A DNA stretch of 64,000 nucleotides from Ostrea edulis (GCF_947568905.1 NC_079166.1:46314001-46378000), one strand, 5' to 3'. Positions 574 through 48,283 are shown, numbered from the stretch's first letter. Numbers and translations: made by a program. Notes: a model not told the origin generated them from the sequence alone.

Positions 574-3241
574 GGTGACGGGAAAGCTTACTAACCAAAT
601 TAATGATAAACAAGAAAATTCAGTGCCCCCAAAGATGAATCTAACATTCTGTAATCTCATATATCGCTGACATTTGGACAATATAAGTTTAGAGATGATA
701 ATTATGATAGCGAATTCAAAAGGTATTTGATTAATTTTTCATGATAAAATTCGTTTTTACAGTTATCCTCCCCCAGTAGAAAAAACAAACGTTAAACAAA
801 ACACGCACAAAATAATGATCCGGAGTACCGCGGTTTCATTCAGGCGAGTTCTCATCTCTGGTGTGTCGAGGGATCCGTGTTGGCTCTACTCTTAATTTTG
901 AATTATAAGATTTATTAGATTGATAACTGTAAGTTATCTTCACGTTTCATAAAATGTGATCTTCAACATCTTGAGACAAATACATGTGTAGCGGTAAAAA
1001 AAAAAAAAAAAAAAAAAAAAAAGCTTCTAATTTGTGATTGCAAAAATTGCAGCCACCGAGGGGCATTTGAAATGTAATGTACCTCAACAATATTTGAATT
1101 AGAATATCAGCAGAAAAACCAAGCCGTGCAGCGTGAAGTAGGGTATTTTTGAAGAATTATTGCATTTTCACTAAATGATCTATAACCCACATGAATTGTA
1201 ATCGTATAACAAGGTACTATATAATTCTTCCATGATTGAAATTACTCCCACTTCGGCAGTTAAAGATGGAATAAAATGCCCCAACTTGTTCTTTCTATTT
1301 TCTGGAACACCGGCTTCTTTATACCTTGTTTGATGTTAAACGATGAATTGCTTGAAAATGCATCCGTCAACCCGAAAGAAAGGGAGGCGAATTTCATTTA
1401 GTTGTGTAAACTTTCACAGGGGCCTAAGATGCTCGTCCATACTACCATATTTTTTTTTATAATAAAAGATCTATTCTTTTCGTTTTGCTTCGTTACATTT
1501 CGTTTCGATTTGGTTTCGTTTTATTCCGCTTTGGTAAGATTTGTTTCGATTTCATTTCACCATTTATAGGTACCCCAAATTGAATGTTTAAATTACAAAT
1601 TGCACTTTAGAGTCTTTTAACATTTTTTTCCATTTTGCTAATCAAATTTAAAACTCAAATAACAAACAACTAATGCATCAATTAATCGGAACTCCGGATC
1701 CTTGTGTGGCTTTGTATGAATTACAATGGAGACAGCCGACCGAGGATACCGATATTTGTACGAAATGGTGGCGCCCTCACGACTCACATAATATTCATAG
1801 AATGTATATTGAGATTATCTATGTTCTTTTGTCGATTTTATCATTTTTCTTTCACTTACGTGTTACCTTTAAAGCCTTGCTTCGCTGACGGGCCAAAATT
1901 TGCTCGGTATTGTCTGGATGTTACTGGACGCTAAAGCGTCAGAGAAATTTCATAGATATTATCTATAAAAGTAAGAGAATATTGTTGTTTCTAATCTACT
2001 GTAATTTACTGAATATGAGTACCACTTTGGGACACGTTAATGACCATTTCATTCTTTTCTCGGTCCAACGGTCACATCATTACACATTACAACTCGATTA
2101 TCGCATCGTTATGCATATTAGATCTCGATTAACGATAAATTCAATCCCTAATTATGTACGTATTACATTAATTTTGGAAATATTTTTTATAACGCAGTTC
2201 TAAATGAAAACCTTAATTCTGCAGAAATGTATGTGCAGTCTGAAAACCCTGATTAGAACAGACCGCGCTCTTGCGCGGCAGTAATAAGGTTTATGTGATA
2301 AAATGACTATTAGTCATGTATGTAGCATTAAAAACACGGTACCTGGACTATTGCCTTAGTGTTGGCGTAGTTCGGTCATCAACCTTAGTAGTTGTCTAGT
2401 TGACTTCCAAAACTTCATTGCCCATGCCTAGCTTGCTTCCAGACCTTCAATGCGCATTTCTGGTTACTAAAGTTCAACCATTCTGGCCAAGTTCGATCAT
2501 CAGCTGCAATAGTAACTAGAGTTGAACCAAAGTACGATCGAACTGCCTTTGGTTGAAACCGGAAGGGGTGTCACTCCACATGTTTGGTCTACCACACAGC
2601 AACATATGCTTACAAAGTGGTTGCCAGACATGCACACTGAAGGTCTGGAAAGAAGTTAGGCATGCGCAATGAAGTTTCGGAATTCGACTAGACAACTACT
2701 ATGGGTAATAATCGAACTACGCCCATTGCAAGCATAGGTTGCGATGTGGTAGACCAGACATGCGTAGTGACACTTCTTCCGGTTTCAACCGAAGGCAGTT
2801 CGATTATACTTTGGTTCAACTCTAGTTACTATAGTTGATGATCGAACCAGGCCCTAGTTGCATTCGGTCCCTCGTGGTATTTAGAGGGTTTGCAACTCTT
2901 TTTCAAGCGTCAGCTTTTATAAAGTTGAAAGAAAAGAAATTTTTGAATGAAGACCGTGACAGCGAAAACAAACAGACAGTCATCCAAAAGAACTTGGTGT
3001 GCCACCTTTGTGACTTTCAATATCCAAAGATGACAAATGATTGAGAGAGAGAGGGGGGGGGGGGGGCATTTAATAGGAGTGTAGAGAAAGTCTCACGCGT
3101 TATTCACTTTGAATTAATTTGCATGATTAGCATCACATTATCATTTATTACACCGTGCTAAAACACTTATTTCATAATATGTATGTTAACCTTATATTCA
3201 TAACTCCTCGGTAGTATAGTGGTAAGTATCCCCGCCTGTCA
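574..3241 (+). repeat. Local segmental duplication, copy 1 (ends inside tRNA-Asp)
   Basis: Begins ggtgacgggaaagcttactaaccaaatt, as does 5765, and is colinear with 5765-10497 through to the tRNA 5' half. Many substitutions and indels, so not a very recent duplication. Confidence 0.95.
2364..2847. repeat. Interleaved inverted repeats A-B-A'-B'
   Basis: 2364-2464 is the imperfect reverse complement of 2623-2723, and 2491-2615 is the imperfect reverse complement of 2726-2847. Confidence 0.8.
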
Positions 3242-3276
3242 CGCGGGAGACCGGGGTTCAATTCCCCGCCGGGGAG
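3205..3276 (+). tRNA. trnD-GTC: tRNA-Asp(GTC), intact
   Basis: 72-nt TCCTCGGTAGTATAGTGGTAAGTATCCCCGCCTGTCACGCGGGAGACCGGGGTTCAATTCCCCGCCGGGGAG, a near match to canonical metazoan tRNA-Asp. Anticodon GTC at 3238-3240, A and B boxes present, Pol III terminator TTTTT at 3283-3287. Confidence 0.97.
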
Positions 3277-3460
3277 GAGAAATTTTTGCGGTCTTCTTAT
3301 ATGTTATAACAAAGGAAATGAACGTCAAAAAATTTCGTCTTCGTTTTTAAGCTGTTTCAATGTATATATAATACTGAAACAGCTTAAAAACGAAGACGAA
3401 ATTTTTTTGACGTTCATTTCCTTTGTTATAACATATAAGAAGACCGCAAAAATTTCTCCT
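3275..3460. repeat. Near-perfect 186-bp foldback palindrome
   Basis: Arms 3275-3359 and 3375-3460 are reverse complements apart from one extra T in a homopolymer run; 15-nt loop. Confidence 0.95.
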
Positions 3461-5697: not shown

Positions 5698-7909
5698 TTA
5701 ATGTTTTTTTAGTATTCTTACAAAATAGAGACTTTGGATATATTTATACATATATATATATATCGGTGACGGGAAAGCTTACTAACCAAATTAATGATAA
5801 ACAAGAAAATTCAGTGCCCTCAAAGATGAATCTAACATTCTGTAATCTCATATTTCGCTGGCATTTGGACAATACAAGTTTAGAGATGCTATGATAGCAA
5901 ATTCAAGTGGTGTTTAGTTAATTTTTCATAATAAAATTCGTTTTTTCAGTTATCCCCCAATAGAAAATAACGTTAAACAAAACACGCACAAAATAATGAT
6001 CCGGAGTACCGCGGGTTCATTCAGGCGAGTTCCCATCTCTGGTGTGTCGAGGGATCCGTGTTGGCTCTACTCTTAATTTTGAATTATAAGATTGATAACT
6101 GTAACTTATTCACACGTTTCATAACATGTGATCTTCAACATCTTGAGACAAATACATACATAATGTATGTAGCGTTAAAAAAAAAAGCTTCTAATTTGTG
6201 ATTGCAAAAACTGCAGCCACCGAGAGGCATTTGAAATGTAATGTACCTTAACAGTATTGGAATATCATCAGAAAAATATAGCAGTGCAGCGTGAAGTAGG
6301 AGATTTTTCAAGAATTATTGCCATTTTACTATATGATCTATAACGCCACATGAATTGTATTCGTATATTACGGTACTACATGTATATATATTTTGCATGA
6401 TTGAAATTACTAAATAAAATGCCCCAACTTGTTCTTTCTATTTTCTTAGACACCGGCTTCTTTATACCTTGTTTGATGTTAAACGATGAATTGCTTGAAA
6501 ATGCATCTGTCAACCTGAAAGACCACATCAAAAGGGAGACGAATTTCAATTAGATGTGAAAACTTTCACAGGGGCCTGAGATGCTCGTCCATACTACCAT
6601 TTTTTATTTTTATGATTAAAGAGTTTGGTTATACAATCTGTTTCTTTTCGTTCTGCTTCGTTACAATTCGTTTCGATTTGGTTTCGTTTTATTCCGTTTG
6701 GGTAAGATTTGTTTCGATTGTGTTTCGCCACTTACAGGTACCCCGGATTAAATGTTTAAATTATAAATTGCATGTTAGAGTGTTGTTGTTTGTTGGTTTT
6801 GTTACAACTAATGCATCAATTAATCGGAACTCCGTGTGGGGCTTTGTATGAATTACAATGGAGACAGCCGACCGAGGATACCGATATTTGTACGAAATGG
6901 TGGTGCCCACACGACTCGCATAATTTTCATAGAACGTATGTTGAGATTATCTATATTCTTTTGCCGATTTTATCATTTTTCTTTCACTTACGTGTTACCT
7001 TTAGATCCTTGCTTCGTGGACGGGTCAAACTTAATTTCTGTGAAAACGAGGAGGTTATTTATATTCGGTCTTTCTGGGAGATAGGAAAGACCGAATATAA
7101 ACTACCCCCTCGTTTCCACAGAAATTAGGTCAAACTTTGCTTGGTATGACCTGGATGTTACTGGGCGCTAAAGCGTCAGAGAAATTTCATAAATACTATC
7201 TATAAAAGTAAGAGAATGTTGCTGTTTCTAATCTACTGTAATTTACTGAATATGAGTACCACTTTGGGACACGCCAATGACCATTTCATTCTTAGCTCGG
7301 TTCAACGGTCACATCGTTACATATTACAACTCGATTATCACATCTTTATACATAATTAACGATAAATTCAATCCCCAATTAAGTACGTATTACATTAATT
7401 TTGTCTATGGAAATATTTTCACGTCATGTTCACGTCAATCACGCAGTTCTAAATGAAAACCTTAATTCTGCAGAAATGCATGTACAGTTTGAAAACCCGT
7501 ATCAGAACAGACCGCGCTATTGCGCGGCCGTAATAAGGTTTATGCGATAAAATGACTATCAGCCATGTATGTAGCATTAAGAACACGCTACCTGAACTAT
7601 TGCTTTAGTGTTGTGCATGTCTGGTTACTAAAGTTCAACCATCCTGGCTTGGTTCGATCATCAACTGTAATTTTGTAACTAGAGTTGAACCCAAGTACGA
7701 TCGAACTGCCTTTGGTTGAAACCGGAAGGGGTGACACTGTGTTTGTCTGGTCTACCATACAGCAACCTATGCTTACAGAGTGGTTGAAAGTTAGTAACCA
7801 GACATTGCGCACTGAAGGTCTGGAAGCAAGTTAGGCATACCAGGTCCCTGGGCATACGCAATGAAGTTTCGGAAATCGACTACATAAGTACTATGGTTGA
7901 TGATCGAAC

Positions 7910-9942
7910 ACTTACTTTGTTTCAACTTTTTTTTTTTTTTTTTTAATTTTTCGAAGTCATAATTATAAATATCATATACAACGTTGATGTAGATATTCCG
8001 GATTTTCGTAATGCTTGCTTGTACGAGTTGTCATTCGTGCGGGACGGTATGTACCCAAAGTTTGGTTGGTTTATATATATATATGCATGTGTTAAATACT
8101 ATGGATAACAACGATTCGCCGGCTAACCGATTATTCGGTTGAAAAAAAAAACTAACTGATTAGAAAATTTGTAACTGATTGGCCGGGTTATTTGTAGTAA
8201 AGTAATACTGTCATGCCTGTATTACAAGTATTTAAAAAAAAAAAGAGGGGGGGTCGTAATATTCAAAAGTCTAGGTGATGTTTAAATATTAACTTTTTAA
8301 ATGACTGATCAGATTCAATAATATTCAAAGTAAAATTTCATACCGATATTTATATTCCATTTTGTAGGTAAACCCTTTTTGAGAGTTCCCAGTCAGGCTC
8401 AATAATGCTTGCGTAAAATAACTGGCCTACCCGGCAAGCAGTACTAGTATCACACTGATAAATTCAACGCTGTCAGCATGATTTCCAGATGGATTTTATA
8501 ATGAGTTCAATGAATCGTACCATTACATAATGCATGGCAATAAAGACATACATCTACATTTCTGTGGCAATGAGGACATACATGTACATTTCCGGTCAGA
8601 GAAACATATATTATTATACATTGTACAAAGTTTGAGGAAGAAAATAAAAATGGAGGGGGGACGCCTAAAATCATGGAGGTCAGACTAAATCATATTTCAA
8701 ATAAAATTTCTGAGTTACTTCTCAATGTTTCACGCATAGTAATACTTAAACGAGAAAGAGGTGAAATGTCAGCTGTGTAGAACGGACTCGCACGTCGAAG
8801 ACAATAGAATTATTTCTTTAACATAGACTTGAAGCCAAATATTGTAATAAAAATAATTATATGATGCACCGTTCTGGCGTGGCTTTGCAAAAAGTGAACA
8901 TTTTGAATTTCTACAAATATCCCTACTTTCATGCAGTTTTTGTTCATGTTTTTACTTATCGAAGCACTCTTCATACTGTTATTTAGTGAATTTAAAAAAA
9001 ATCTGAAGCTAAAATGAAATAAAATAATACAGTATTTGAGAATTATAAGTTTTAACGATTAACTGGTTAATTAGATCTACATGTAATCGGTCAAAAGAAT
9101 TTTAAAACATGACTATTTTCACCCCAGGGCATTGTCATCCCTACTAACTAAATATTACTGCTCTGTTCACAAACAAGATCTTCAGTGTTTGCACCTCTGG
9201 TGTGTTTGCTAAACACTTTCTTTTGTATTCTTTATAGAATCGATGACTATATTCGTTCGTTATATATTTACTTTTTCATACTGCTTACAATTTGTATTGG
9301 GGGGGGGGGGGGGGGGGGGGGCTAGTGGAGAAGTCTGCCTATAAAATAAGATTACTAGTGGGAGAACATGTTATGATTTTTTATTACAGTTTATTTTATT
9401 TCAGGTTTTGTTTTTTATATATTATATTATTGTACAATTTCGACCTCCGATATTTAATTTAAGACCTCAGCTGTACGCAAAATAATCATGCGCCGCAAAT
9501 CGAAGGTTATCATAAGGGATGGATCTGACTCAGTAAATGCATTCGATTTCCTGGGCCAATCTGAATACAAATTCTTTATATCTTTAATATCTGATGTGTT
9601 TATCTGTTAGAATGGAACCAATCTCCGAGTCCCGCATATGTTTTGCAACTTTGAGTTTGTTGCTATTTTAAATGACTTACTCGAGGAAATATTTGGATTT
9701 GCAATGTTTGGAAATCTGTGATGTACATGTATTCAATGGCAGTGTTAGGAGATAATGGCTAGGCTGTAATGTATTTTAAAATAAGCATGTAATTATATAA
9801 ATGTTTGTATTTGGGTGCTTTGTATACTCTTTACCGGAAGTTCATATATACCGTCCCACACGAACGATAATTCCTATATGCAAACATTACGATAAGAGGC
9901 AATATCAACAGTAGAATAACATAGAAATTACTCAACTTTAGT
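7910..9942. mobile_element. Composite non-coding insertion (probably nested non-autonomous DNA transposons)
   Basis: Absent from copy 1. Flanked by a 21-bp imperfect direct repeat (7889-7909 and 9943-9963). Diverged inverted repeats near 8008-8055 and 9847-9891. An internal ...gtcatcccta end near 9143 resembles hAT TAGGGATG termini. Confidence 0.55.
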
Positions 9943-10460
9943 TACTATAGTTTATGATCGAACTACGCCCATTGTAAGCATAGGTTGTTGTGTGGTAGAC
10001 CATACATGCGCAGTGACACCTCTTCTGGTTTCAACCGAAGGCAGTTCGATCGTTCTTTGGTTCAACTCTAGCTACTATAGTTGATGATCGAACCACACCT
10101 AGTTAGTTGCATTCGGTCCGCCATGGTCTTTAGAACATTTGTAAGTCTGTTTCAAGCGTCAGCTTTTGTAAAGTTGAAAGAAAAGAAATTTTTGAATGAA
10201 GACCGTGACAGCGAAAACACACAGACAGTCGTCCAAAAGTACTTGGTATGCCACCTTTGTGTCTTTCAATATCCAAAGGTGACAAATGATTGAGAGAGAG
10301 AAAGAGAGAGAGAGAGACATAGGCATCTAATAGGAGTGTAGAGAAATTTCACGTGTTATTCACTTTGAATTAATTTGCATGATTATCATCACATTATCAT
10401 TTATTACACCGTACTAAAACACTGATTCTATTATTTGTATGTTAACCCTATATTCATAAC

Positions 10461-10497
10461 TCCTCGGTAGTATAGTGGTAAGTATCCCCGCCTGTCA
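10461..10497 (+). pseudogene. 5' half of tRNA-Asp(GTC), broken just after A37
   Basis: Identical to 3205-3241; sequence then switches to LINE ORF1. I found no 3' half elsewhere in the window. Confidence 0.93.
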
Positions 10498-10978
10498 GGG
10501 ACACTATGCAAAAGCATGTAAATCTACCAGATGTAAACAGTGTGAGGAATGGGAACACAGATGTTCGTGCCGGGTGAGTGACCACGGAGACAACGAAATG
10601 AGTGAAGGTGAAATAGATGCATGTGAGGTGAATAACGGGGACGACAATGATGTACACAGCGACGGAGACGCGGAGGCACCAGAAGGGGACCAGGAAATCG
10701 GTGAGCCGATAAAACAGGCCAAAGAAGATGAACAAGGTGTAGTGAAAAAAGACACAGATGAAACAGGGACCAGTGATCAGAATGAAAATGGTGATAACAA
10801 AGAAAAGGAAGAAACAACAACTGAAAACGAACCACCGGATATTACAGATACCGAAATGTGCGATTGTGAAGAGTCTTCAACCGTAGAATCGGAACTTGAT
10901 ACAGAAGTGACCGTGAAAAACGCCAAGAAGAGGAAAAGTAAAGTGAAAAATAAGAGCAAAGTAAAGAAGAACAAATAA
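10498..10978 (+). pseudogene. LINE ORF1 C-terminal part
   Basis: GHYAKAC...CKQCEEWEHRCSC resembles CCHC knuckles, followed by an E/D-rich stretch and KKRKSKVKNKSKVKKNK. Confidence 0.75.
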
Positions 10979-11390
10979 AATGGAAAGCATCATTAACTTT
11001 TTCATTTTTACAATGGTTTTTATAACCTCGTGGAATTGTAACGGTTTGTGTGACGTTGATAAAATGAAAATGGTATTTAGCTTATTTGATGATAGAAAAT
11101 ATGACATTGTAGCTTTACAGGAAACCCATTGGAAAGACAATTTTATTGACAATTATAAACACTTATGGAATGGTGTTATATATTATGATAGTACAAATAT
11201 GTCCTCCAAAGGTGTAGCATTTTTAGTTAAGAATAATATCAAAACAAACATAGAAAAGGTAAAAGGGTTTGATGGGAGGTATTTACATATCAAATACAAA
11301 GAAAATGATAACAATTATGACATAATAAATGTATATGCGCCAAATGATGTAAAGGAAAGGGTATTGTTTTTTAATAATATTATGGAAATA
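10498..11390 (+). mobile_element. L1/Tx1-type non-LTR retrotransposon fragment, truncated at both ends
   Basis: End of ORF1 (zinc knuckle remnants, acidic then Lys-rich tail) followed after a 1-nt gap by ORF2 starting with an APE endonuclease. The 3' limit is approximate. Confidence 0.85.
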
Positions 11391-11426
11391 ATGCCACACT
11401 ATCTATGTCTGCAAGAGTATTATTAA
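10980..11426 (+). pseudogene. LINE ORF2 N-terminus, APE-like endonuclease (truncated)
   Basis: Motifs SWNCNGL, DIVALQETH, SKGVAFLV, GRY and INVYAPN; homology is lost after ERVLFFNNI. Confidence 0.9.
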
Positions 11427-14400
11427 AATCTCCCATAATAATTAAACTTGTAGAATGTGGCATTGTGATTTTTTTTAAAAAAATACATGTACCAAATTTA
11501 ACCAAAATATTTATAACCTATTTTCTGAGTATTAATTGTCTCTAAATGAAGATCGCTGGTCATTTTGCTTTAACATACTGCATGTATCTTCAATCTAATT
11601 AAAATCAGGTCCAAAGATACGCTCACAATCGCTACGCAGAGTATACGGCGCGAATCTAAGAAGTCTGAATTTAATTACATTGCATGAATCTTATAACTCT
11701 TAGTCTAATAAGTCTATATGCATGTGCATGTAACTCAGTATAATGCAAAATTTTACTTGGTTCACGTGGTTTAGAGATTGCTTTATAATTCGGTAATGGC
11801 AGATAGAAAACTAAACTAATACTGAAGGCATATTTCGATTTACTATTTTTCTTACATACATGTATTACATATACGTATTTTTTTTATCACAATTGTACCA
11901 AATCATTCGATGACGTACATTTTTTGGGAGTCAGTAAAGAAATCTATGGGGAAAACCGCCTTTGGACAGGGCCTTAAAGATACGCAAAACCATAAAGGAG
12001 ATTAAAATCTCCACCGACTGAATGTGCGTATGTGGTCCGTTGCAAACCCGTCTCGTGACGTCATTGTCTCCCCACCCAGTTGCCCGTGAGATAACTTTTA
12101 TATCATTTTTTTTTTCTTCAAATCTTTCAAAATAAATCCATAGTGTTTTGTCAAAGCGTACTATAAAATGACATATAGTACATCAGCTGAAGTGTCCGTG
12201 TGGATCCCCCGGCCATTTTCTCATTTGTATGTAGTTACATCTACACATGTACATGTATATTGCTTTGATTTTGTCTCGGTGACTGCATAGCTTTCATGTA
12301 TAAAAATACCTACAGCGGGCCGAACATACACCCCTTTACACATATTTTGAAATGATTCAAATTCTTAAAATCGCAATATATCTTAATTTTGTTCATTTCA
12401 TTTTGATTTCTTTCTTAAAATTATTTGTTTAGTGTATCTTTTTTCTAATCAAATCTTTCTTGAAGATTTTAGTCGTAGATTCTAAAATAGTAAGAAATAA
12501 CGTAGCTTTACAGTTATGAGAGTATCTCATCATCCGCCGTGGACGAGCTCTGTAAGAAAAAAAAAGCAGAGAAAGTTGTTTTACATAGATATGGTTCGCG
12601 AAAATCACCGGCATATAACAAATTCATTACCAAAAAAGTTCATGAACTTCTAAAAGCTTTTGGAGTAAGTTCATATGACCCCGCTATTAGTTAAAGAATG
12701 AAACTTAAGACGTCCTCTAATTCTATTTTTGATAAAATTGCGTAGTTACATGTATCAAAATGAAATAAATCAGATATGCATACAGGTATTACAGGTCTAT
12801 TGTATATTAAATTTGAATATACCTACAAAGCTCAAAAACTGTTTAAAAATCTAATTCAACTTTGTTATCAATACCCGCACAATGAAAGAAAATGAGATGA
12901 TAATTTTCTGTAGAGAACACAATGAATATTAAATATATAGATCTACGCAACAAACAACAAGCATTTGATTTTCCTATTCGTCGAAAACCGAATGTACACG
13001 TGTAATTCGTTGCAAGAGTGTTTTAAGATCCCCCCCCCCCTCCCATTAGATTGTCTCTTTTATTGCACGATGAAGTGACCATAATCGATAGTCGAACAAC
13101 TTACTCCGCAAATGTCCAATAATATGTTCTAATCATTATAAAATACACGAAAATAAAAATTGTGTTACAATGCGAGTCTCTGCCTCCATAGTGTGTCAGC
13201 ATTTTGGGGGCAAAGAAAAATAAATGTATGTAGGTGTTTTGTCTAAAGCAGTGGTACATTTTGCATAGCTTTTGTTACCGTAACAGAACTATAGTGAATT
13301 CATTAGTATGTCGTACTTTAAAGAAAACAAACGTTTAGATGTGAGATACTTTAACAGGCTTAAAATGGAGAGGAAAATGTTGACGTCCACTTCCTTTGTT
13401 TTATCATACGAAGAGCGATGTTAGTTAAGAAATAAAGAGCTGGATACAGTAAGCATAGCATATCGGCCCTGTCCACACGTAAAAAAAAAATAAAGTTATG
13501 CTATCTTCAATTTCATTGCCCCAAATAATTTGTTTAACTCCTCCTGTGTATGGAAATGACATTTGTATATGAAATTGCACGTGCGTCTTAGAAATCTAAA
13601 TCCGAAACCGGAGTCATAATCACTTTTGAAAATGCATGAGGGTATGAACTGCAACCCTTCACACAGACATACTTCATGCAGCGCGTGAGATCAAGATTAC
13701 ACTGAAAATATAAATGTCTTCGTTCTGTTTCTCTGCCGAAGATAGAAATCAATAACTCTTTCAAAAAGGTACAAACTTCTAATTGTCTTCCATTTAATTT
13801 TAGTAAATGAAATGAACGGAAATCAATTAAAGAAAGTACAATTCGAAGATAGCACGTAGCAACGCGTCACTCCGTCTTCCAAGAAAGTTTTGATGGAGTT
13901 CTTGAAATATACGGCACAATAGCTAGCTTTCTCCAGATTTTTTTCACACGTCCACTTCAAAACATATCGCATTTATAAGTTCCACACTATCCCTGTTTTG
14001 TGTGTTATACTTAGGTTAGGATCAGCGATAAATCCGGTAAACGCTATGTACCGACATAAACCCTGCGGTACCGCCATGTCAGTATCATGGGTTTGTACGC
14101 GTTGTCTGTTATATGGACTTTAATGACCAATTCAAATGTTTACGTTCTTGAACACCGGTAGAATATCTAAGGAAGTGTAGATAACGTCATGCTAAAACCT
14201 AGTATTACATGTGAAAAATACGGAACTTGAAGGACACCATTGATCTCTTCTATGTCTTTGATATCCAACTGTGTTTCATCCCTTTGATAAGACTTACACT
14301 GTTTTGTGTGAATTAGACTGATGGGAAAGAGAATGCAAAGGTTCTTTTGAACAAAAGTTTTTACAGGAATAAGTTTACCATATTCTTTATCAGAAAGGCT

Positions 14401-15821
14401 ATAACAACATGTATTTCATAGGAACACGTTTTACACAAAATGATGATCCTTGAGGAAATTAGATCCTCGGCTTTTGAGCTCAACTGCGTGAGATGCTATA
14501 CCTGTGTAGGTACTGACTTCATCCTTACTTCGAGGGTCCAAACATATACATCCATTACTTCAAACATATTATACATTCATTTCAAACCCATACAGTTGGG
14601 GGGGAAAATCTGCGTCATTTCAAATTTTAAAGGTGTTGAAAAGGACTACATTTTGTGACGGAAGCATTGTTTAATCAAAAAGTCCTAAATCTGCATGGTT
14701 TTAATATCCAATATATGAACTTTTAAATGCTGCAAATTCATTAACTTTGTTGATATATTTTTTTCCAAACAAAACAGCAATGCTTAAAAATGTCTATATT
14801 AATTTACCCGACATTTTGTATGAAAATTCAGTATTTTAGCCAATAATTCAAAAATATGATCCATAACCCCTTCTTTTTAAAGTTCCATTTCATATTTTAA
14901 GGCAAGACTTTGTACCTTTAGTGCAGTTTTAAAAATTTACAATACTTTTTGTATGTTCTTTTGAGTTCTCAAATTCTATATCATGATTTTTTCTGTATAC
15001 ATGTACATGTACTAGTATTAAGTGCAAAAAAGTTGCTATCTATTTCCAATGCACTAGCATTAAAACTTTTTATATCTGTATTTTTAGAAGATGTGAGTAT
15101 GTTATATTTAATTGATGTAATTATTGATCTGTGTTGCTTATGTTGTGTTAATCACGTTTATGCAAATAAATCGAAAATAAATTTGTAAGTGCAAAAAGGT
15201 CAAGTTTATCACACTGCACTCAAAAACAAGTACTATCACCCCAGTTTTTTCATTTTAATTTCACAATTTCTCTTCAATGTAGAAATAAGAAATATATTTT
15301 TCTTAAAAATGACAATATTACAAAACTCTTTAAAGCTTGTCTTGAACATATCCCATTGATATGCAATCAAAAAGATACGAAACAAGCTACATTGTATGAC
15401 AACTTACTAATTAACAACTTACTAATTACCTCTCCTTGAATACAACAAATATTTACCATGCAAAGTACTAACAAAGTAAAATCACGTACGTCTTTGATAT
15501 GTGAAAATTATCATACACACTCTTTGAATATGGTAGATTCATCTGTATATTTGAGTATAGCAGCGAAAATGGTGTGGTGTTGCTCCACAGACATTGTCTC
15601 AAAGCAGTTATGTTTAAATGAAGTCTGAAGAGACGATTGAAAAGAACGTTTTTAGAATTGGAGTCATTTTTACAAACAATAAAGTAACGGTATACATCTT
15701 CCTGTTTTCCGTAAGAACATAAAGGATTGTAAATAATATTCCATCTGATATGCAAAATAAGACATATAGATATATCATACATTGATCTTTGTTCAGACTA
15801 TCATGTTTCGAAATTTGATTT

Positions 15822-16310
15822 CTAGTACATGTTTTCTGGTTTGCTCGAGATGATTTAGACTTTATAATAAGTTTAGACTTGTAGATAATCTAATACATGT
15901 TTTCTGGTTTGCTTGGGATGATTTAGACTTGTAGATAATTTAGTACATGTTTTCTGGTTTGCTCGGGATGATTTAGACTTGTTTATAATAAGTTTAGATT
16001 TGTAGATAATCTAGTACATGTTTTCTGGTTTGCTCGGGATGATTTAGACTTGTAGATAATCTAGTACATGTTTTCTGGTTTACTTGGGATGATTTAGACT
16101 TGTAGATAATCTAGTACATGTTTTCTGGTTTGCTTGGGATGATTTAGACTTGTAGATAATCTAATACATGTTTTCTGGTTTGCTTGGGATGATTTAGACT
16201 TGTAGATAATCTAGTACATGTTTTCTGGTTTGCTTGGGATGATTTAGACTTGTAGATAATTTAGTACATGTTTTCTGGTTTGCTCGGGATGATTTAGACT
16301 TGTAGATAAT
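15822..16310 (+). repeat. Minisatellite, 50-bp unit, about 9 copies
   Basis: Unit tagtacatgttttctggtttgcttgggatgatttagacttgtagataatc; units 1 and 3 carry an extra ~20 bp. Confidence 0.95.
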
Positions 16311-16776
16311 GAGGTTCCTCACCTGTATGGATTTTAAACATGTCCCTAAAAGTTATCAAATTTATCCCCGAATGTCGACAACACTGACCCAGCTCTACAT
16401 GATATTAAACTGCGTTTCAAATCTTGGCGATTAAATTAAATCAAATTATATTTATTTTACGAAATACCGTCCTGAAATAGACACAAATACATGCATTCGA
16501 AAAGAATTCTTCGTGTGACAAGGGGTGCTACTTACATTTACCACTATACTGCTGAGATAACTTCCACACCTACTGGAATACAGGTGGGGTGCTTATGATT
16601 AGTTTGTCATATTAGAAGTTTAATTGACCTGTATAAGACCTTAATTGATTTATAACAGTGTAAAACACATCAACTATGGTATTCACATAATATGGTGCTC
16701 GTATTGCGTTTGCTAAAATGAAATTCAGAGGTGGGTAATGTCTAATAGAAGATAATTCACATTATCCACATATTTA

Positions 16777-42974: not shown

Positions 42975-44108
42975 ATGGATAAGGCAGGTAGAGAGAAAAC
43001 AATAGAGGAATCTGATTTAACTGAGACAGAACTTAAGGAGTTAAATGAGGCATTTAAAGCATTAGGTGTAAAACCAAAGACAAAGTCTGCTGCAGAACTT
43101 AGACAATGGATGGTTAGCTATGCTAAATGGACCACACCTGAATATCGACGATCAGAAGAAACATTTAAGCGAGAGTCTGCATCAAGTGAACCTCTGGGTG
43201 CTACAAGTAGTCCCCATGTGACAAAACACATTACTCCACTTCATGCACCTAAATTACCAGTTTTCTCAGGAGATAAGAAAGGAGATACCTCTTATGACTT
43301 GTGGCGCTATGAAGTCAAATGTTTAATGAAGGACGATGTTAGTGCTGCAACAATTCTACAAAGTATTAGGAGATCATTGCGTTCGGGAGCATCAAGGGTT
43401 CTTATGCGCCTTGGTACAGATGCATCAATTGAGGAAATCCTTCACAAATTTGACAGCGTATATGGCATAGTAGATGATAATGAGAACTTGTTATCACAAT
43501 TCTATAGTGCATCACAGAAGGAAAATGAGGATGTATCTGAATGGAGTTGTAGACTAGAGGATCTGCTAGACAAAGTCATTCAGAGAGGAGAGATAACTCC
43601 TACAAATACAGATCAGATGCTGAGAAACATGTTTTGGAATGGCCTGTCGGAGAAGTTAAAAGATATTACAGGTCACATCTTTAAAGAGTGTGGAGATTTT
43701 GACCAACTTAGGCTAGCAATAAGGAAAGTAGAGCAGGACAAGTTGAGAAAGAAAGGCATTGTTAAGAAAGCAACAATAAACCAGGCGATGCCAAGTAATA
43801 CACAGATAGACGAGTTGAAGGCTATGATACAGAGCATGAGCACTAAGATGAATGAGATGAGAGAGGAAATTAATGAAGTACGCACTAGATATCAAGGAGA
43901 GAGACATAATTCAGATCAAGGGAATTATAGTCGAGGCAAAGATAAACAGCAAGGAAAAGACATAACATGCTTCAAATGTGGTCAGAAAGGACACGTGGCA
44001 GTAGGATGTAGAGTTCGACTTGACCACAAGAAAGATTTAAACTCCAAAGGGCCTACATCGAGACGCGGACGTCAGGCTACAAGACAGAACAGCGTCAACC
44101 AGGACTAA
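42975..44108 (+). CDS. gag: Gypsy Gag (PNMA-like capsid plus CCHC knuckle), 377 aa
   Basis: PKLPVFSG...SYDLWRYEV capsid-like region and CFKCGQKGHVAVGC knuckle. Confidence 0.93.
   Translation: MDKAGREKTIEESDLTETELKELNEAFKALGVKPKTKSAAELRQWMVSYAKWTTPEYRRSEETFKRESASSEPLGATSSPHVTKHITPLHAPKLPVFSGDKKGDTSYDLWRYEVKCLMKDDVSAATILQSIRRSLRSGASRVLMRLGTDASIEEILHKFDSVYGIVDDNENLLSQFYSASQKENEDVSEWSCRLEDLLDKVIQRGEITPTNTDQMLRNMFWNGLSEKLKDITGHIFKECGDFDQLRLAIRKVEQDKLRKKGIVKKATINQAMPSNTQIDELKAMIQSMSTKMNEMREEINEVRTRYQGERHNSDQGNYSRGKDKQQGKDITCFKCGQKGHVAVGCRVRLDHKKDLNSKGPTSRRGRQATRQNSVNQD
44036..44042 (+). other. Probable -1 ribosomal frameshift slippery site T TTA AAC
   Basis: The heptamer is in the gag frame, and the -1 frame stays open from here into pol (…QPGLIGDPMEVSV). 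Confidence 0.75.
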
Positions 44109-44119
44109 TAGGAGATCCT

Positions 44120-47100
44120 ATGGAAGTGAGTGTGCAGATAAATGGAATTCCGGCCACTGCATTATTAGACACTGGGTCAACTGTGTCAACTATTTGCCAG
44201 TCATTTTACCAACAGCATTTTTCAGACATAGAAATCCAGGATATTAAGGAAGTTTTTCAACTTCAATGTGCTGATGGTAGTACTCTACCTTACAAGGGAG
44301 CAGTAGAGCTGGAAGTATTATCTGAGGGTCTCGGAGATAACACAGAACATGCATGTTTATTTCTGCTGGTGGATGATACTAGTTATCACAGCAAGGTCCC
44401 CATACTTTTAGGAACAAATGTCCTTAAGACTGTGATGGAGAAAACCAGAAACGACCATGGAGACAGATTTCTGCAGACTGCACACCTGCATGAACCATGG
44501 TTTTGGACATTTAGATGCATCTCACTGCGAGAAAGGGAATTGCAGAGGAATAATTACAGATTAAGTGTAATTAAATCAGCAGAAAGGAAACCAGTCATCA
44601 TACCACCTAACAGTGAAATAACAGTTAATGGTTATGCAGATAAGATGGTTCCATATGTTCAGACCTTAGCGCTGATACAGGATACCAAGAAATCAGTCAT
44701 TCCTAAGGATTTGGATGTGATATCTAATCTCGTTGATTACCAGTATGGATCCAGGGAACCACTGATGGTTACGATTAGCAATGTCACAACACGGACTGTC
44801 AAGATTGCACCGAAGGCAGTGATAGCTGAACTGCAGCCTGTGACATTGGAGGAAATACCCATATTGCCCAGTAGCCAGGATACTGCAGAACCAACTGTTT
44901 TTAATATACCTGAGGACAGTTTGACCAATGAGGAATTTGCTAAGGCAAATGAGATGATCTCCAAGAATGGTGATATCTTTGCATGGGGAGATGTAGACAT
45001 TGGTCATGTAACAACTGTGAAGCACAGGATTGAGTTGGTGGATCCTACACCTTTTAAGCAGCGATGTAGACGTATTCCCCCATCAATGTTCCAGGAAGTT
45101 AGAAATCACCTACAACAATTAGTGGAGGCAGGAGTGATTAGGAGGTCCAAATCGCCATTCTCCAGCAATGTAGTCCTTGTAAGGAAGAAGAATGGAGACC
45201 TGAGAATGTGTGTGGACTACAGGCAGCTGAACAACAAGACGAAAAAAGATGCCTATGCCTTGCCCCGTATTGAGGAGATCTTGGACAATTTATCAGGGAA
45301 TCGCTACTTCACTGTACTTGATGCAAAATCAGGATACCACCAAATTGAAATAGATGAGGAACACAAGGAAAGGACAGCTTTTACTGTGGGTCCTCTAGGA
45401 TTTTTTGAATACAACCGGATGCCCTTTGGATTATCAAACAGCCCAGCTACATACCAACGACTGATGGAGGACTGTCTTGGAGAACTGCACCTCAACATCT
45501 GTTTTATTTTTTTAGATGATATTATTGTTTTCTCTAGAACTTTCGAGGAACATCTCCAACGACTGCAGCAAGTGTTTGATAGACTGAGGGCAACTGGATT
45601 AAAACTTTCGCCAAAGAAATGCACATTTTTCCAGAGACGTGTGAAATATGTAGGACACATTGTATCAGACCAGGGCATCGAGACAGATCCAGATAAAACC
45701 AGCAAAGTTCTTAACTGGCCAACCCCTACAACACCTGAAGAGGTCCGGAAATTTTTAGGATTTGCTGGTTATTACCGGAGATTTATCGCCAACTTCAGCA
45801 AGATTGCGAGACCCTTATCACAAGTCATGCCTATACCTACAGATAGCAAGAAGTCAGCCAAGAAGAAAAATTCTAAGACATGGCAGTGGGGGCAAGAGGA
45901 GGAGGAGTCATTCAGAAAGCTGAAGGAAGCATTAGCATCACCTCCGGTACTAGGATATGCCAACTACAATCTTCCCTTCGAGTTACATACAGATGCCAGT
46001 CTGAATGGATTAGGCGCTGTATTGTACCAAGAGGAAGATGGACAGAAGAAAGTGATCAGTTATGCCAGCAGAGGATTAACAAAAGCTGAAAGGAACTATC
46101 CAGCACACAAATTGGAATTTCTGGCACTAAAGTGGGCAGTCTGCGATAAATTTAAAGATTACCTTACAGGCAGCAAGACCAAGGTTTTGACTGATAACAA
46201 CCCACTTACTTATGTCCTCACGACAGCAAAACTTGATTCCACAGGACATAGGTGGTTAGCTGCACTTGCCAGTTACGATCTAGACATCCAGTATCGTCCA
46301 GGAAAGAACAACTCGGATGCAGATGGACTTTCCAGACTAACAGGACAGACAACCCAAGATTCCTGTACATGTATTTCTAATGAATCTATTAAAGCTTTAT
46401 GTAACTGTGTACAATTAGAAATTCCATGTGTAGAAAATTTGTGTGTTGATTCAGAAATTGTTAATCAGTTAACTGATCAAGTTTCTCAGTTCCAACAGGT
46501 AAACTGGAAGGAAGTCCAAGGAAGGGATCCAACACTCAGGAACTGGATGCATCATGTGAAACTGGGAAAGAAACCCAAGATGAGTGATCTACCACTATCC
46601 CCCAACTCCCTAGCACTCATCAGGAATTACCACTCTCTGTTCTTGAGCAATGGAATACTCCAGCGACAAGTCCAGATAGATGGCACTGACCGGACACAGG
46701 TGGTTGTTCCTGGAGATATGGTCCCAGACATCTTGTGTAGTTTACATAACAACTTTGGACATCCAGGCCGTGATCGTCTGATATCCTTGGTAAAATATAG
46801 ATTTTACTGGAATGGGATGAATAACGACATCGAGAACTGGATTAAGAAGTGCCACAGATGTCTGAGGAGGAAAGTCCCCACCAATCAGAGAGCACCACTC
46901 ATGCCAATAAGGACAACCTATCCATTGGAATTGGTTTGTATGGACTTCTTAACCCTAGAACCATCTAAAGGAGGATACCACCATATCTTAATCATCACAG
47001 ACCATTTTACTAGGTTTGCACAGGCAATTCCTACCAAGAACCAGACGGCGAAGACAACAGCCGAAACGTTTTACAACAGCTTCATGACCAAATATGGGTT

Positions 47101-48283
47101 TCCAACTAGAATACACAGTGACCAGGGAGCCAACTTTGATGGGAACATCATCAAGGAGCTGTGTAACATCACTGGTATGAAGAAGTCCCGAACAACCCCT
47201 TACCATCCTATGGGTAATGGCATGTGTGAGCGTTTTAATAGGACATTGATGGATATGCTCGGAACCTTGAATCCCTCACAGAAGTCCAACTGGAAGGCCC
47301 ATGTACCATCATTAGTTCATGCCTACAACAGTACCCGACATGAGAGCACAGGACAGTCTCCATATTTCCTCATGTTTGGAAGAGAGCCCAGGCTTCCTGT
47401 GGACTTGGCCTTTGGACTTGGAGACAAAGAAGAGAAAACAAGGACAAAGTATGTGGAGGATCTGAGATCCAGAATGAAGACAGCATACCACCTTGCTCGG
47501 AGAGCTGCTGAGAGAGCAAGAGAAAAACAGGGCAGATTCTACGACCTGAAAGTAAGGGGAGCAGATTTGCAGGAAGGAGATCGAGTCTTGGTGAAAGTAG
47601 TAGCATTTGAGGGAAAGCACAAAATAGCAGATAGGTGGGAGGAAGATCCCTATCAGATTGTGCGGCAACCTAATCCAGATGTCCCAGTGTTTGTCGTCAA
47701 ACGGGAGGATGGAACAGGCAGAACACGAATTCTCCATCGGAATTTACTTCTGCCGATAGGTTGCATAGATCCCGAAATGCTAACTACTCCCTTGCGACCA
47801 GTTCCTAAGCCCAGAAGAAAGACACAACCAGAGAAGAAACAAACCACAGACAAGATAGTAGATCGGAGTGATGAATCGGATTCTAGCGATTCTGATGAAG
47901 ATTGTTTGTTTGTAGAGGTACCGGTACTTAACCCGACAGTGACACCCCCTATAGATGACCCACCCATCATCAATGAGGAGGAAGTGCCACTTGATGTACC
48001 ACAGCAACGACCAGAGAGGGAAGCCATGGATACCCTTTCACCCCGAGCTCCAGAGGGTGATGGTCAGATGCCTGTGGAGGAGGAAGTGAAATATTTACCT
48101 CGACGATCTGCTAGGACCAAACAGCCACCAAAGAAGCTTGCTGACTACCATGTATATCAGGTTACCCATGACAGGAGAAGCAAGGATTTAGAGACATTCA
48201 GGGAAATGCTAGAGGTCACACATCGACCTGAAGAGAGAACTCTTTTATTGAAATGCTTTTCAGATTATGTAAATAAAATTTAA
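44120..48283 (+). CDS. pol: Gypsy Pol polyprotein (protease, RT, RNase H, integrase); true start probably via the frameshift near 44040
   Basis: LLDTGS protease, RMPFGL and FLDD RT motifs, TDAS/DNNPL RNase H, H-H-C-C plus DDE integrase; no stops over 1387 aa. Confidence 0.97.
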   Translation: MEVSVQINGIPATALLDTGSTVSTICQSFYQQHFSDIEIQDIKEVFQLQCADGSTLPYKGAVELEVLSEGLGDNTEHACLFLLVDDTSYHSKVPILLGTNVLKTVMEKTRNDHGDRFLQTAHLHEPWFWTFRCISLRERELQRNNYRLSVIKSAERKPVIIPPNSEITVNGYADKMVPYVQTLALIQDTKKSVIPKDLDVISNLVDYQYGSREPLMVTISNVTTRTVKIAPKAVIAELQPVTLEEIPILPSSQDTAEPTVFNIPEDSLTNEEFAKANEMISKNGDIFAWGDVDIGHVTTVKHRIELVDPTPFKQRCRRIPPSMFQEVRNHLQQLVEAGVIRRSKSPFSSNVVLVRKKNGDLRMCVDYRQLNNKTKKDAYALPRIEEILDNLSGNRYFTVLDAKSGYHQIEIDEEHKERTAFTVGPLGFFEYNRMPFGLSNSPATYQRLMEDCLGELHLNICFIFLDDIIVFSRTFEEHLQRLQQVFDRLRATGLKLSPKKCTFFQRRVKYVGHIVSDQGIETDPDKTSKVLNWPTPTTPEEVRKFLGFAGYYRRFIANFSKIARPLSQVMPIPTDSKKSAKKKNSKTWQWGQEEEESFRKLKEALASPPVLGYANYNLPFELHTDASLNGLGAVLYQEEDGQKKVISYASRGLTKAERNYPAHKLEFLALKWAVCDKFKDYLTGSKTKVLTDNNPLTYVLTTAKLDSTGHRWLAALASYDLDIQYRPGKNNSDADGLSRLTGQTTQDSCTCISNESIKALCNCVQLEIPCVENLCVDSEIVNQLTDQVSQFQQVNWKEVQGRDPTLRNWMHHVKLGKKPKMSDLPLSPNSLALIRNYHSLFLSNGILQRQVQIDGTDRTQVVVPGDMVPDILCSLHNNFGHPGRDRLISLVKYRFYWNGMNNDIENWIKKCHRCLRRKVPTNQRAPLMPIRTTYPLELVCMDFLTLEPSKGGYHHILIITDHFTRFAQAIPTKNQTAKTTAETFYNSFMTKYGFPTRIHSDQGANFDGNIIKELCNITGMKKSRTTPYHPMGNGMCERFNRTLMDMLGTLNPSQKSNWKAHVPSLVHAYNSTRHESTGQSPYFLMFGREPRLPVDLAFGLGDKEEKTRTKYVEDLRSRMKTAYHLARRAAERAREKQGRFYDLKVRGADLQEGDRVLVKVVAFEGKHKIADRWEEDPYQIVRQPNPDVPVFVVKREDGTGRTRILHRNLLLPIGCIDPEMLTTPLRPVPKPRRKTQPEKKQTTDKIVDRSDESDSSDSDEDCLFVEVPVLNPTVTPPIDDPPIINEEEVPLDVPQQRPEREAMDTLSPRAPEGDGQMPVEEEVKYLPRRSARTKQPPKKLADYHVYQVTHDRRSKDLETFREMLEVTHRPEERTLLLKCFSDYVNKI

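Follow-up and report, generated by a model that had tools for sequence, protein, structure and literature searches.

A duplicated tRNA-Asp gene of Ostrea edulis joined at A37 to a young LINE: a probable targeted insertion

How did a transfer RNA (tRNA) gene of the flat oyster Ostrea edulis come to be joined, just after its anticodon, to the inside of a retrotransposon, and does this join mark a site at which the element integrates? We addressed this question in a stretch of 64,000 nucleotides (GCF_947568905.1 NC_079166.1:46314001-46378000; hereafter, the window), in which a second copy of a tRNA-Asp gene switches into a long interspersed nuclear element (LINE). In target-specific LINEs, gene insertion that is programmable, RNA-mediated, and site-directed occurs naturally; to our knowledge, few types of LINE target have been described. 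We consider, with a probability of about two in three, that the window holds the left (5') junction of a targeted insertion by a young LINE belonging to a bivalve lineage that integrates in tRNA genes, and that the 3' part was lost by rearrangement. The window junction is read as the surviving half of a targeted insertion because the join at A37 fits the second-strand site of this lineage.

Anatomy of the interrupted tRNA-Asp gene

The only intact tRNA in the window is a tRNA-Asp(GTC) (Table 1), of which the tRNA proper occupies 3205-3276, with A37 at base 3241. The disrupted copy consists of positions 1-37, identical to the intact gene at 37 of 37 nucleotides, and the window has no other copy. 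The 3' half (CGCGGGAGACCGG) was present once in the window, in the intact gene, whose sequence from position ~22 reads GTATCCCCGCCTGTCAC. Both copies lie within an old segmental duplication with ~90-92% substitution identity (8-10% of aligned bases different), and the homology between the two units ends exactly at A37. No resemblance was found between the sequence 3' of 10497 and the 2.5 kb downstream of the intact tRNA-Asp. In the flank immediately upstream (9943-10460 versus 2697-3204), the substitution identity was 89.7%; at this divergence (10.3%), the probability of observing zero changes in 37 nucleotides is 0.018. Because the 37 nucleotides are identical despite flanks that have diverged by ~10%, selection probably kept the second tRNA-Asp copy intact up to recent times.

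The disrupted copy and the intact paralog have ~2.7 kb of upstream flank in common, in agreement with the earlier note on this DNA, which had described a disrupted genomic tRNA locus and not a retro-chimera. In the latter case, as in U6-L1 chimeras, the reverse transcriptase would have jumped from LINE RNA onto a 5' tRNA half, with insertion of the resulting chimera at another place. It is true that the anticodon loop is where tRNA halves end and where the tRNA part stops here, but this half stands in its genomic context; moreover, a related contig (L016) has the same layout and another (L011) a true target duplication (see below). A retro-chimera is therefore extremely unlikely.

On the other side of the join, nucleotides 10496-11398 were identical (903/903, BLASTN) to nucleotides 853-1755 of L012, a complete element of ~5.35 kb with intact open reading frames (ORFs). 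ORF1 of this element (365 residues) contains a CCHC zinc knuckle, which reads CFKCKKQGHYAKAC in full copies (Pfam zf-CCHC, residues 199-215). The LINE piece of the window begins at about residue 205, within the knuckle, and its translation directly after A10497, GHYAKAC (GHYAKACKSTRCKQC), is the tail of this knuckle, followed by an acidic/basic tail. ORF2 (P0180, 1297 residues) has the organization of APE-type LINEs of the L1 group (APE, apurinic/apyrimidinic endonuclease-like), with an N-terminal APE endonuclease (Exo_endo_phos, E 1.6e-15) followed by a reverse transcriptase (RVT_1, E 4.3e-33). At its C-terminus, zf-RVT matched weakly (24.2 bits, E 5.6e-5; Pfam cut-off 27.5), and no restriction-like endonuclease domain was found with Pfam in the full-family proteins. 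The window retains the N-terminal half of the endonuclease (Exo_endo_phos, E 7e-10, profile positions 2-112 of 225), identical to residues 1-137 of P0180 (137/137, BLASTP).

The reading that a tRNA-Asp copy is cut after A37 and switches into the ORF1 zinc knuckle and then into the APE domain of ORF2 was thus confirmed. The join, which had been called exact, is indeed at A37, but the tRNA (...GTCA) and the LINE (...AACAGGGACAC) share a 2-nt CA, so that the boundary may be set at 10496 or 10498. A 2-nt microhomology is typical of LINE 5' joins. The end of the LINE, previously placed at 11390, had to be moved, since the identity runs to 11398.

The depth of mapped contigs over the LINE piece was 230 versus ~25 in one run and 340 versus ~47 in another, with 0-1 mismatches, and the depth of raw reads was ~15x versus ~1x; this indicates roughly 10 near-identical copies of the family in O. 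edulis. ORF2 variants differed by 0.1-0.2%, and the family was also found in a sister species, with 97.4% identity. The family is thus young, multi-copy, and intact. Its full-length protein P0180 came from a word search for which the window fragment had been aligned with long relatives. A word search with a 148-residue fragment had yielded only short, 65-74% identical fragments on short contigs, and the best full-length relatives in an exhaustive search of representatives with the window fragment were 46% identical. The contigs encoding P0276, P0274, and P0192 (L014, L097, and L099) end before any junction, and the remainder of the LINE is absent elsewhere in the window. When scanned with a 3' untranslated region (UTR) pattern, genome contigs gave one chance match, in a bacterial metagenome-assembled genome without LINE homology (L100), and viral contigs gave no match.

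The best match of the endonuclease among solved structures was 2v0r ('LTX', E 9.5e-18), an L1 endonuclease bearing the Tx1L hairpin loop; it came ahead of the wild-type human L1 endonuclease (1vyb, E 2.3e-14). Together with the CCHC knuckle of ORF1 and the target specificity of the lineage, this hints indirectly at a Tx1 affinity.

The 3' side of the insertion is unusual. The forward LINE arm ends at 11398 (...AATGCCACA) and the next ~66 nt are the reverse complement of the bases that follow in the element (L012, 1747 to ~1812). The inverted piece is entered through a 5-nt CCACA microhomology (11394-11398), and its end repeats, inverted, the last 9 nt of the forward arm. A joint between 11389 and 11464 on opposite strands, observed with mapped contigs, stems from full-length copies. 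The two arms are convergent (forward 853-1755, then reverse 1812-1747 in L012 coordinates) and no poly(A) is present. A twin-primed insertion was rejected, since its arms would diverge and its poly(A) would be retained. A simple snap-back of a single broken copy did not reproduce the order of the pieces, and a hairpin deletion between two convergent copies is possible, though less economical. Because the arms are convergent, unlike those of twin priming, we read the 3' side as a fold-back, microhomology-mediated template switch, of unspecified exact pathway, and not as a normal LINE end. The 3' end, earlier described as lost, is thus not simply missing, since an inverted tract follows the forward arm. 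The template switch would have removed the remaining ~3.6 kb of the element, the poly(A), the 3' part of the tRNA, and host DNA. Because the retained LINE piece has no substitutions, this loss probably took place with the insertion or soon after.

Several observations on the duplicated region may be mentioned here. The duplication is direct, with an offset of ~5.2 kb, its second copy starting at 5765, 2.5 kb past 3241. A near-perfect palindrome of ~186 bp (3275-3460; arms of 61 nt, 98% complementary; 95.7% self-complementary as a whole) starts where the intact tRNA-Asp ends, at its final bases and terminator, and does not occur in the second copy; it may be a foldback or miniature inverted-repeat transposable element (MITE) inserted at the 3' end of the tRNA. 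The flank upstream of the disrupted tRNA includes a high-copy repeat (9800-10135, depth in thousands), inverted copies of which are present in both duplication units (2499-2615 and 7675-7777).

Table 1. Features of the tRNA-Asp/LINE locus, in window coordinates
Feature	Position	Strand	Basis
Intact tRNA-Asp(GTC) paralog	3204..3277	+	ARAGORN; sequence
Old segmental duplication, copy 1	574..3241	+	Repeat finding and BLAST
Old segmental duplication, copy 2 (5765-7909 and 9943-10497, with ~2 kb of unrelated DNA, 7910-9942, between them)	5765..10497	+	Repeat finding and BLAST
tRNA-Asp positions 1-37 (A box, D-arm, anticodon GTC, A37)	10461..10497	+	Exact match to the intact gene
CA common to tRNA (GTCA) and LINE (AACAGGG), 2-nt junction microhomology	10496..10497	+	Comparison with L012 and loose end of read-run X19
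LINE ORF1, C-terminal 159 codons (frame from 10499, stop 10976-10978)	10498..10978	+	Identical to L012
LINE ORF2 start, first ~139 residues of the APE endonuclease	10980..11398	+	Pfam; BLASTP against P0180; BLASTN against L012
Inverted LINE piece (reverse complement of L012 1747 to ~1812)	11399..11464	-	Comparison with L012
Low-copy non-LINE DNA after the inverted piece, without homology to the DNA 3' of the intact tRNA	11465..11563	.	Read depth, BLAST

Junctions of related elements

The question of tRNA targeting was addressed with the help of the relatives; the window family itself provided two junctions, the 5' junction of the window and the 3' junction of L015. In four related families (Arg, Tyr, Leu, and Ile/Lys), the flank after the poly(A) was a tRNA gene starting at D-arm position 19-22. 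In L096, whose ORF2 is 63% identical to P0180, this flank matched positions 21-71 of the Rfam tRNA model (E 3.5e-4, anticodon TCT). In L016 (46%), it also matched positions 21-71, with a 19-nt intron, and aligned from position 22 to a Mytilus tRNA-Tyr called by ARAGORN, while the flank of L011 (38%) matched positions 22-71 (31.2 bits), with a long variable arm and the anticodon TAG. In the P0005 family (46%), the flank was an Ile-type tRNA from position 19 (L004 and L007) or a Lys-type tRNA from position 22 (L005).

L015 belongs to a subfamily that is 89% identical, and its nucleotides 2240-2345 show how the 3' UTR of the L012-type element goes on. Its poly(A) is followed (2356-2420) by a tRNA-like unit, GACGCCTGA-CTGTCAC-CATGG..GTGGGTTCGAATCCCAT-GGAATCC then T6, with an Asp-type CTGTCAC loop, a good T-arm, an acceptor strand, and a T6 terminator; the flank starts ~15 nt before the loop. 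We rejected it as a canonical tRNA, the anticodon stem being mismatched and the T-arm alone giving a score, and it could be a tRNA-derived RNA polymerase III (Pol III) unit or a hybrid.

Besides that of the window, three 5' flanks were 5' parts of tRNAs ending in the anticodon loop (positions 33-38 overall). The layout of L016 was like that of the window, with an intact tRNA-Lys(TTT) followed by a duplicated flank in which tRNA-Lys 1-38 is directly joined to the 5' UTR of the element. L006 is preceded by positions 1-37 of the tRNA model (E 0.07), and the second element of L011 by a tRNA-Leu up to ~position 34. When the 5' part of this second element and the 3' flank of the first one were joined over their 11-bp overlap (GGCGCTGGTTT), a tRNA-Leu(TAG) called by ARAGORN was restored. 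L011 thus has a target-site duplication of 11 bp, consistent with staggered nicks; for the other families we infer a duplication of 16-20 bp, though none was seen on a single copy.

On the L016 contig, the intact tRNA-Lys(TTT) is at 390-462, tRNA-Lys 1-38 at 1427-1466, and the tRNA-Tyr (GTA, with intron), from position 22, at 7634-7701. The first bases of the 5' UTR (TCGAACGCAC) were common to the 5' ends of L004 and L006, the start of L005, and position 3748 of L098, though ORF2 is only ~50% identical, which suggests that these elements have a conserved 5'-terminal signal.

As controls, 59 distant ORF2 loci (~27-35% identity) from the same metagenome scan were run through ARAGORN, and no tRNA gene was found. 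A T-arm after the poly(A) was observed in none of the 40 distant loci with a readable poly(A) flank. In a tree of 149 ORF2 sequences, the five elements with tRNA junctions fell in one clade of 73 rows (support 99), and a branch with a support of 100 lay between the tRNA-linked clade and 38 tRNA-free loci.

These findings bear on the idea that the insertion was a chance event, i.e. an untargeted LINE insertion or the capture of a cDNA at a double-strand break in the tRNA gene, possibly followed by a deletion, in a family without tRNA preference. The window has a single junction with a 2-nt microhomology, without poly(A) or target duplication, and its 3'-truncated piece with an inverted templated tract resembles endonuclease-independent or break-repair insertions; one member of the clade (L098) also lies outside tRNA. 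However, the break at A37 is in the same loop as the 5' junctions of three related families, the nearest sampled families have tRNA or tRNA-like 3' flanks, and the distant controls have no tRNA flanks. We consider a chance event improbable.

The earlier note had suggested a possible family whose endonuclease targets the tRNA-Asp anticodon loop. The relatives do sit in tRNA genes, but their flanks after the poly(A) start at position 19-22, indicating that the primed junction is in the D-arm and that the anticodon loop corresponds to the 5' join. The anticodon-loop junction thus looks like the usual second-strand join of the lineage, and the first nick like an event in the D-arm. We also evaluated the narrower proposal that the endonuclease of the window family is specific for tRNA-Asp, with the priming nick in the anticodon loop after A37. 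Both available junctions of this family have a CTGTCA(C) loop, one in the window and the other in the flank GACGCCTGACTGTCACC after the poly(A) of L015. Yet in every relative with a readable 3' junction the flank after the poly(A) starts at position 19-23 and not at 38, the flank of L015 also starts before its loop, the junctions of related families lie in Arg, Tyr, Lys, Ile, and Leu genes, and the window family has only two junctions. Such a specificity appears unlikely, and a preference of this family for Asp, seen in these two CTGTCA(C) junctions only, is unproven.

Model of the insertion and points against it

In the model that we favor, a functional second copy of tRNA-Asp(GTC) would recently have been struck by a 5'-truncated copy of a young L1/Tx1-type family, from a lineage whose members insert into tRNA genes and read in the direction of the tRNA. 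Reverse transcription would be primed, from the poly(A) tail, at a nick made in the bottom strand where the D-loop ends (position 19-22), and cutting or joining of the top strand would take place 11-20 nt farther downstream, at position 33-38 of the anticodon loop. The expected product consists of tRNA 1-37, LINE-A(n), and tRNA 22-73, with a duplication of the segment from the D-stem to the anticodon. The copy in the window would have retained only the 5' junction, the element past ORF2 residue ~139, the poly(A), the 3' part of the tRNA, and some host DNA having been replaced via a fold-back, microhomology-mediated template switch during the resolution of the insertion or soon after. The layout of the locus, the young age and copy number of the family, and the junction geometry of its relatives were observed; the model further supposes that the window family has this same geometry, that the D-arm nick comes first, and that the 3' part disappeared in the way described.

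A number of observations weigh against this model. The 3' structure of the window cannot be produced by simple target-primed reverse transcription. For the window family we have one 5' junction, in tRNA-Asp, and one 3' junction, in the odd tRNA-like unit of L015, and thus no canonical 3' junction; in this unit, the anticodon stem (CCTGA/CATGG) does not pair and Infernal recognises the T-arm only. The first 33 nt of L012 were not recognisable as tRNA with Infernal and are D-arm-like by eye only. The two sides of L016 carry different tRNAs, tRNA-Lys on the 5' side and tRNA-Tyr on the 3' side, which could be due to recombination between copies, a deletion in a tRNA cluster, or an assembler join. 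Most of the contigs, including those from Logan, are short-read assemblies of multi-copy elements, so that the two flanks of an element may derive from different copies. Finally, L098, a member of the clade found in a real genome assembly (Mytilus edulis), has a tRNA array on either side and both of its junctions in spacers, not inside a gene; it is the exception among the independent elements of the lineage, which as a whole lie at the same tRNA position.

The L098 locus (CAJPWZ010002714.1) has a full LINE exactly between the two arrays (619-3434 and 9962-15400). These consist of tRNA-Tyr genes with an intron (1363-bp period) and of 82-nt class-II tRNA-like genes (600-bp period); the latter are tRNA-Ser-like, though labelled 'Phe (aaa)' by ARAGORN.

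A further point against the model is that, among the independent contigs and reads listed for the window, none bridges 10497/10498 or 11464/11465, the depth at the tRNA/LINE junction coming mostly from other tRNA-Asp and LINE copies. This, and the identity of the LINE piece to other copies, would also be found if a multi-copy LINE and a multi-copy tRNA had been mis-joined by the assembler, the fold-back being an artefact of chimeric reads. A mis-join is, however, not expected to fall at A37, in keeping with the geometry of the clade, or to show short microhomologies at both switches, and the shortness and asymmetry of the inverted tract set it apart from a strand-flip read artefact. We therefore regard an assembly artefact as very unlikely, and retain a targeted insertion as the preferred explanation.

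Other parts of the window contain additional repeats. The low-copy DNA that follows the inverted piece is succeeded by an extremely high-copy short repeat (11564-11731; contig depth ~55,000-107,000 versus ~25-45 for single-copy DNA), which has many inverted joints at ~11608-11638 and looks MITE- or foldback-like. A tandem array with a unit of ~50 bp is present at 15821-16316 (BLAST self-matches only). Large ORFs at 42975-48283 were considered as a second LINE and rejected, as they are part of an unrelated Gypsy-type long terminal repeat element, with an apparently intact coding region that comprises a PNMA-like gag (377 residues) with a CCHC knuckle and a pol (1387 residues) with protease, reverse transcriptase, RNase H, and integrase.

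Relation to known target-specific elements

Tx1-clade LINEs with a specific target comprise Tx1L in Tx1D, Keno in U2 small nuclear RNA genes, Mutsu in 5S ribosomal RNA genes, and Kibi/Koshi in microsatellites (PMC4494074, PMC3706591). The elements described here are similarly APE-type, L1-group LINEs, with a CCHC ORF1 and fixed sites in multicopy sequences. Unlike these systems, however, they insert within tRNA genes, where related families occupy the same structural position of different tRNA species. The zebrafish Tx1-clade LINE Dewa, which had been cited as an analogy for insertion in tRNA arrays, is only loosely comparable. It is a Tx1-type LINE associated with tRNA gene arrays, but its described target is the spacer of tRNA-Leu and not the gene (PMC3706591), whereas the present elements interrupt the coding sequence of the tRNA, between the A box and the B box.

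LINEs specific for tRNA-Pro, tRNA-Arg, and tRNA-Glu genes have been described (NeSL-1_TV, LIN15_SM, and LIN25_SM, respectively; PMC4640811), but they belong to the NeSL group and have a restriction-like endonuclease, in contrast to the N-terminal APE of the present lineage. The Dada DNA transposons (Dada-tD, -tV, -tA, -tL, and others) target tRNA genes, Asp-GTC among them, in the A-box and anticodon regions (PMC8869645). They are cut-and-paste elements that make 6-bp duplications, and their anticodon-region families are in the orientation opposite to the tRNA, while the elements described here use an RNA intermediate and have the orientation of the tRNA. TRE5/TRE3 of Dictyostelium and Ty3 of yeast likewise use tRNA genes as safe landing pads; however, they land at set distances outside the gene through binding of the transcription machinery (PMC5391098), leaving intact the tRNA, which is split here. 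Our literature searches brought up neither an APE-type LINE lineage that lies within tRNA genes nor a mollusc LINE at such a site, which is weak evidence as the searchable literature is incomplete.

We tentatively propose, as a possibility that falls somewhat short of even odds, that a bivalve Tx1-like lineage integrates at one structural position inside tRNA genes, the nick being made behind the D-loop and the join within the anticodon loop. Its families would have shifted among Asp, Arg, Tyr, Lys, Ile, and Leu tRNAs and tRNA-like Pol III units, and the flat-oyster family would now be active and inactivate functional tRNA genes. Candidates for the means by which the same position is found in different tRNA genes are the conserved 3' A box/D-loop, extra DNA-binding domains, and Pol III factors. 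If this proposal is true, what is recognised would not be one particular sequence but a property that tRNA genes share, for example bound TFIIIC or the 3' part of the A box or D-loop. An APE-type lineage that splits the genes of many tRNA species, at a structural position that stays fixed, would then represent a new target class, and its closely related endonucleases with different tRNA preferences would lend themselves to the study of how APE endonucleases acquire specificity. Elements active today would be eroding the tRNA gene arrays of oysters, and the window locus would offer a dated example of this process, in which a tRNA gene duplicated long ago had stayed conserved until recently and was then destroyed by an insertion that was aberrantly resolved.
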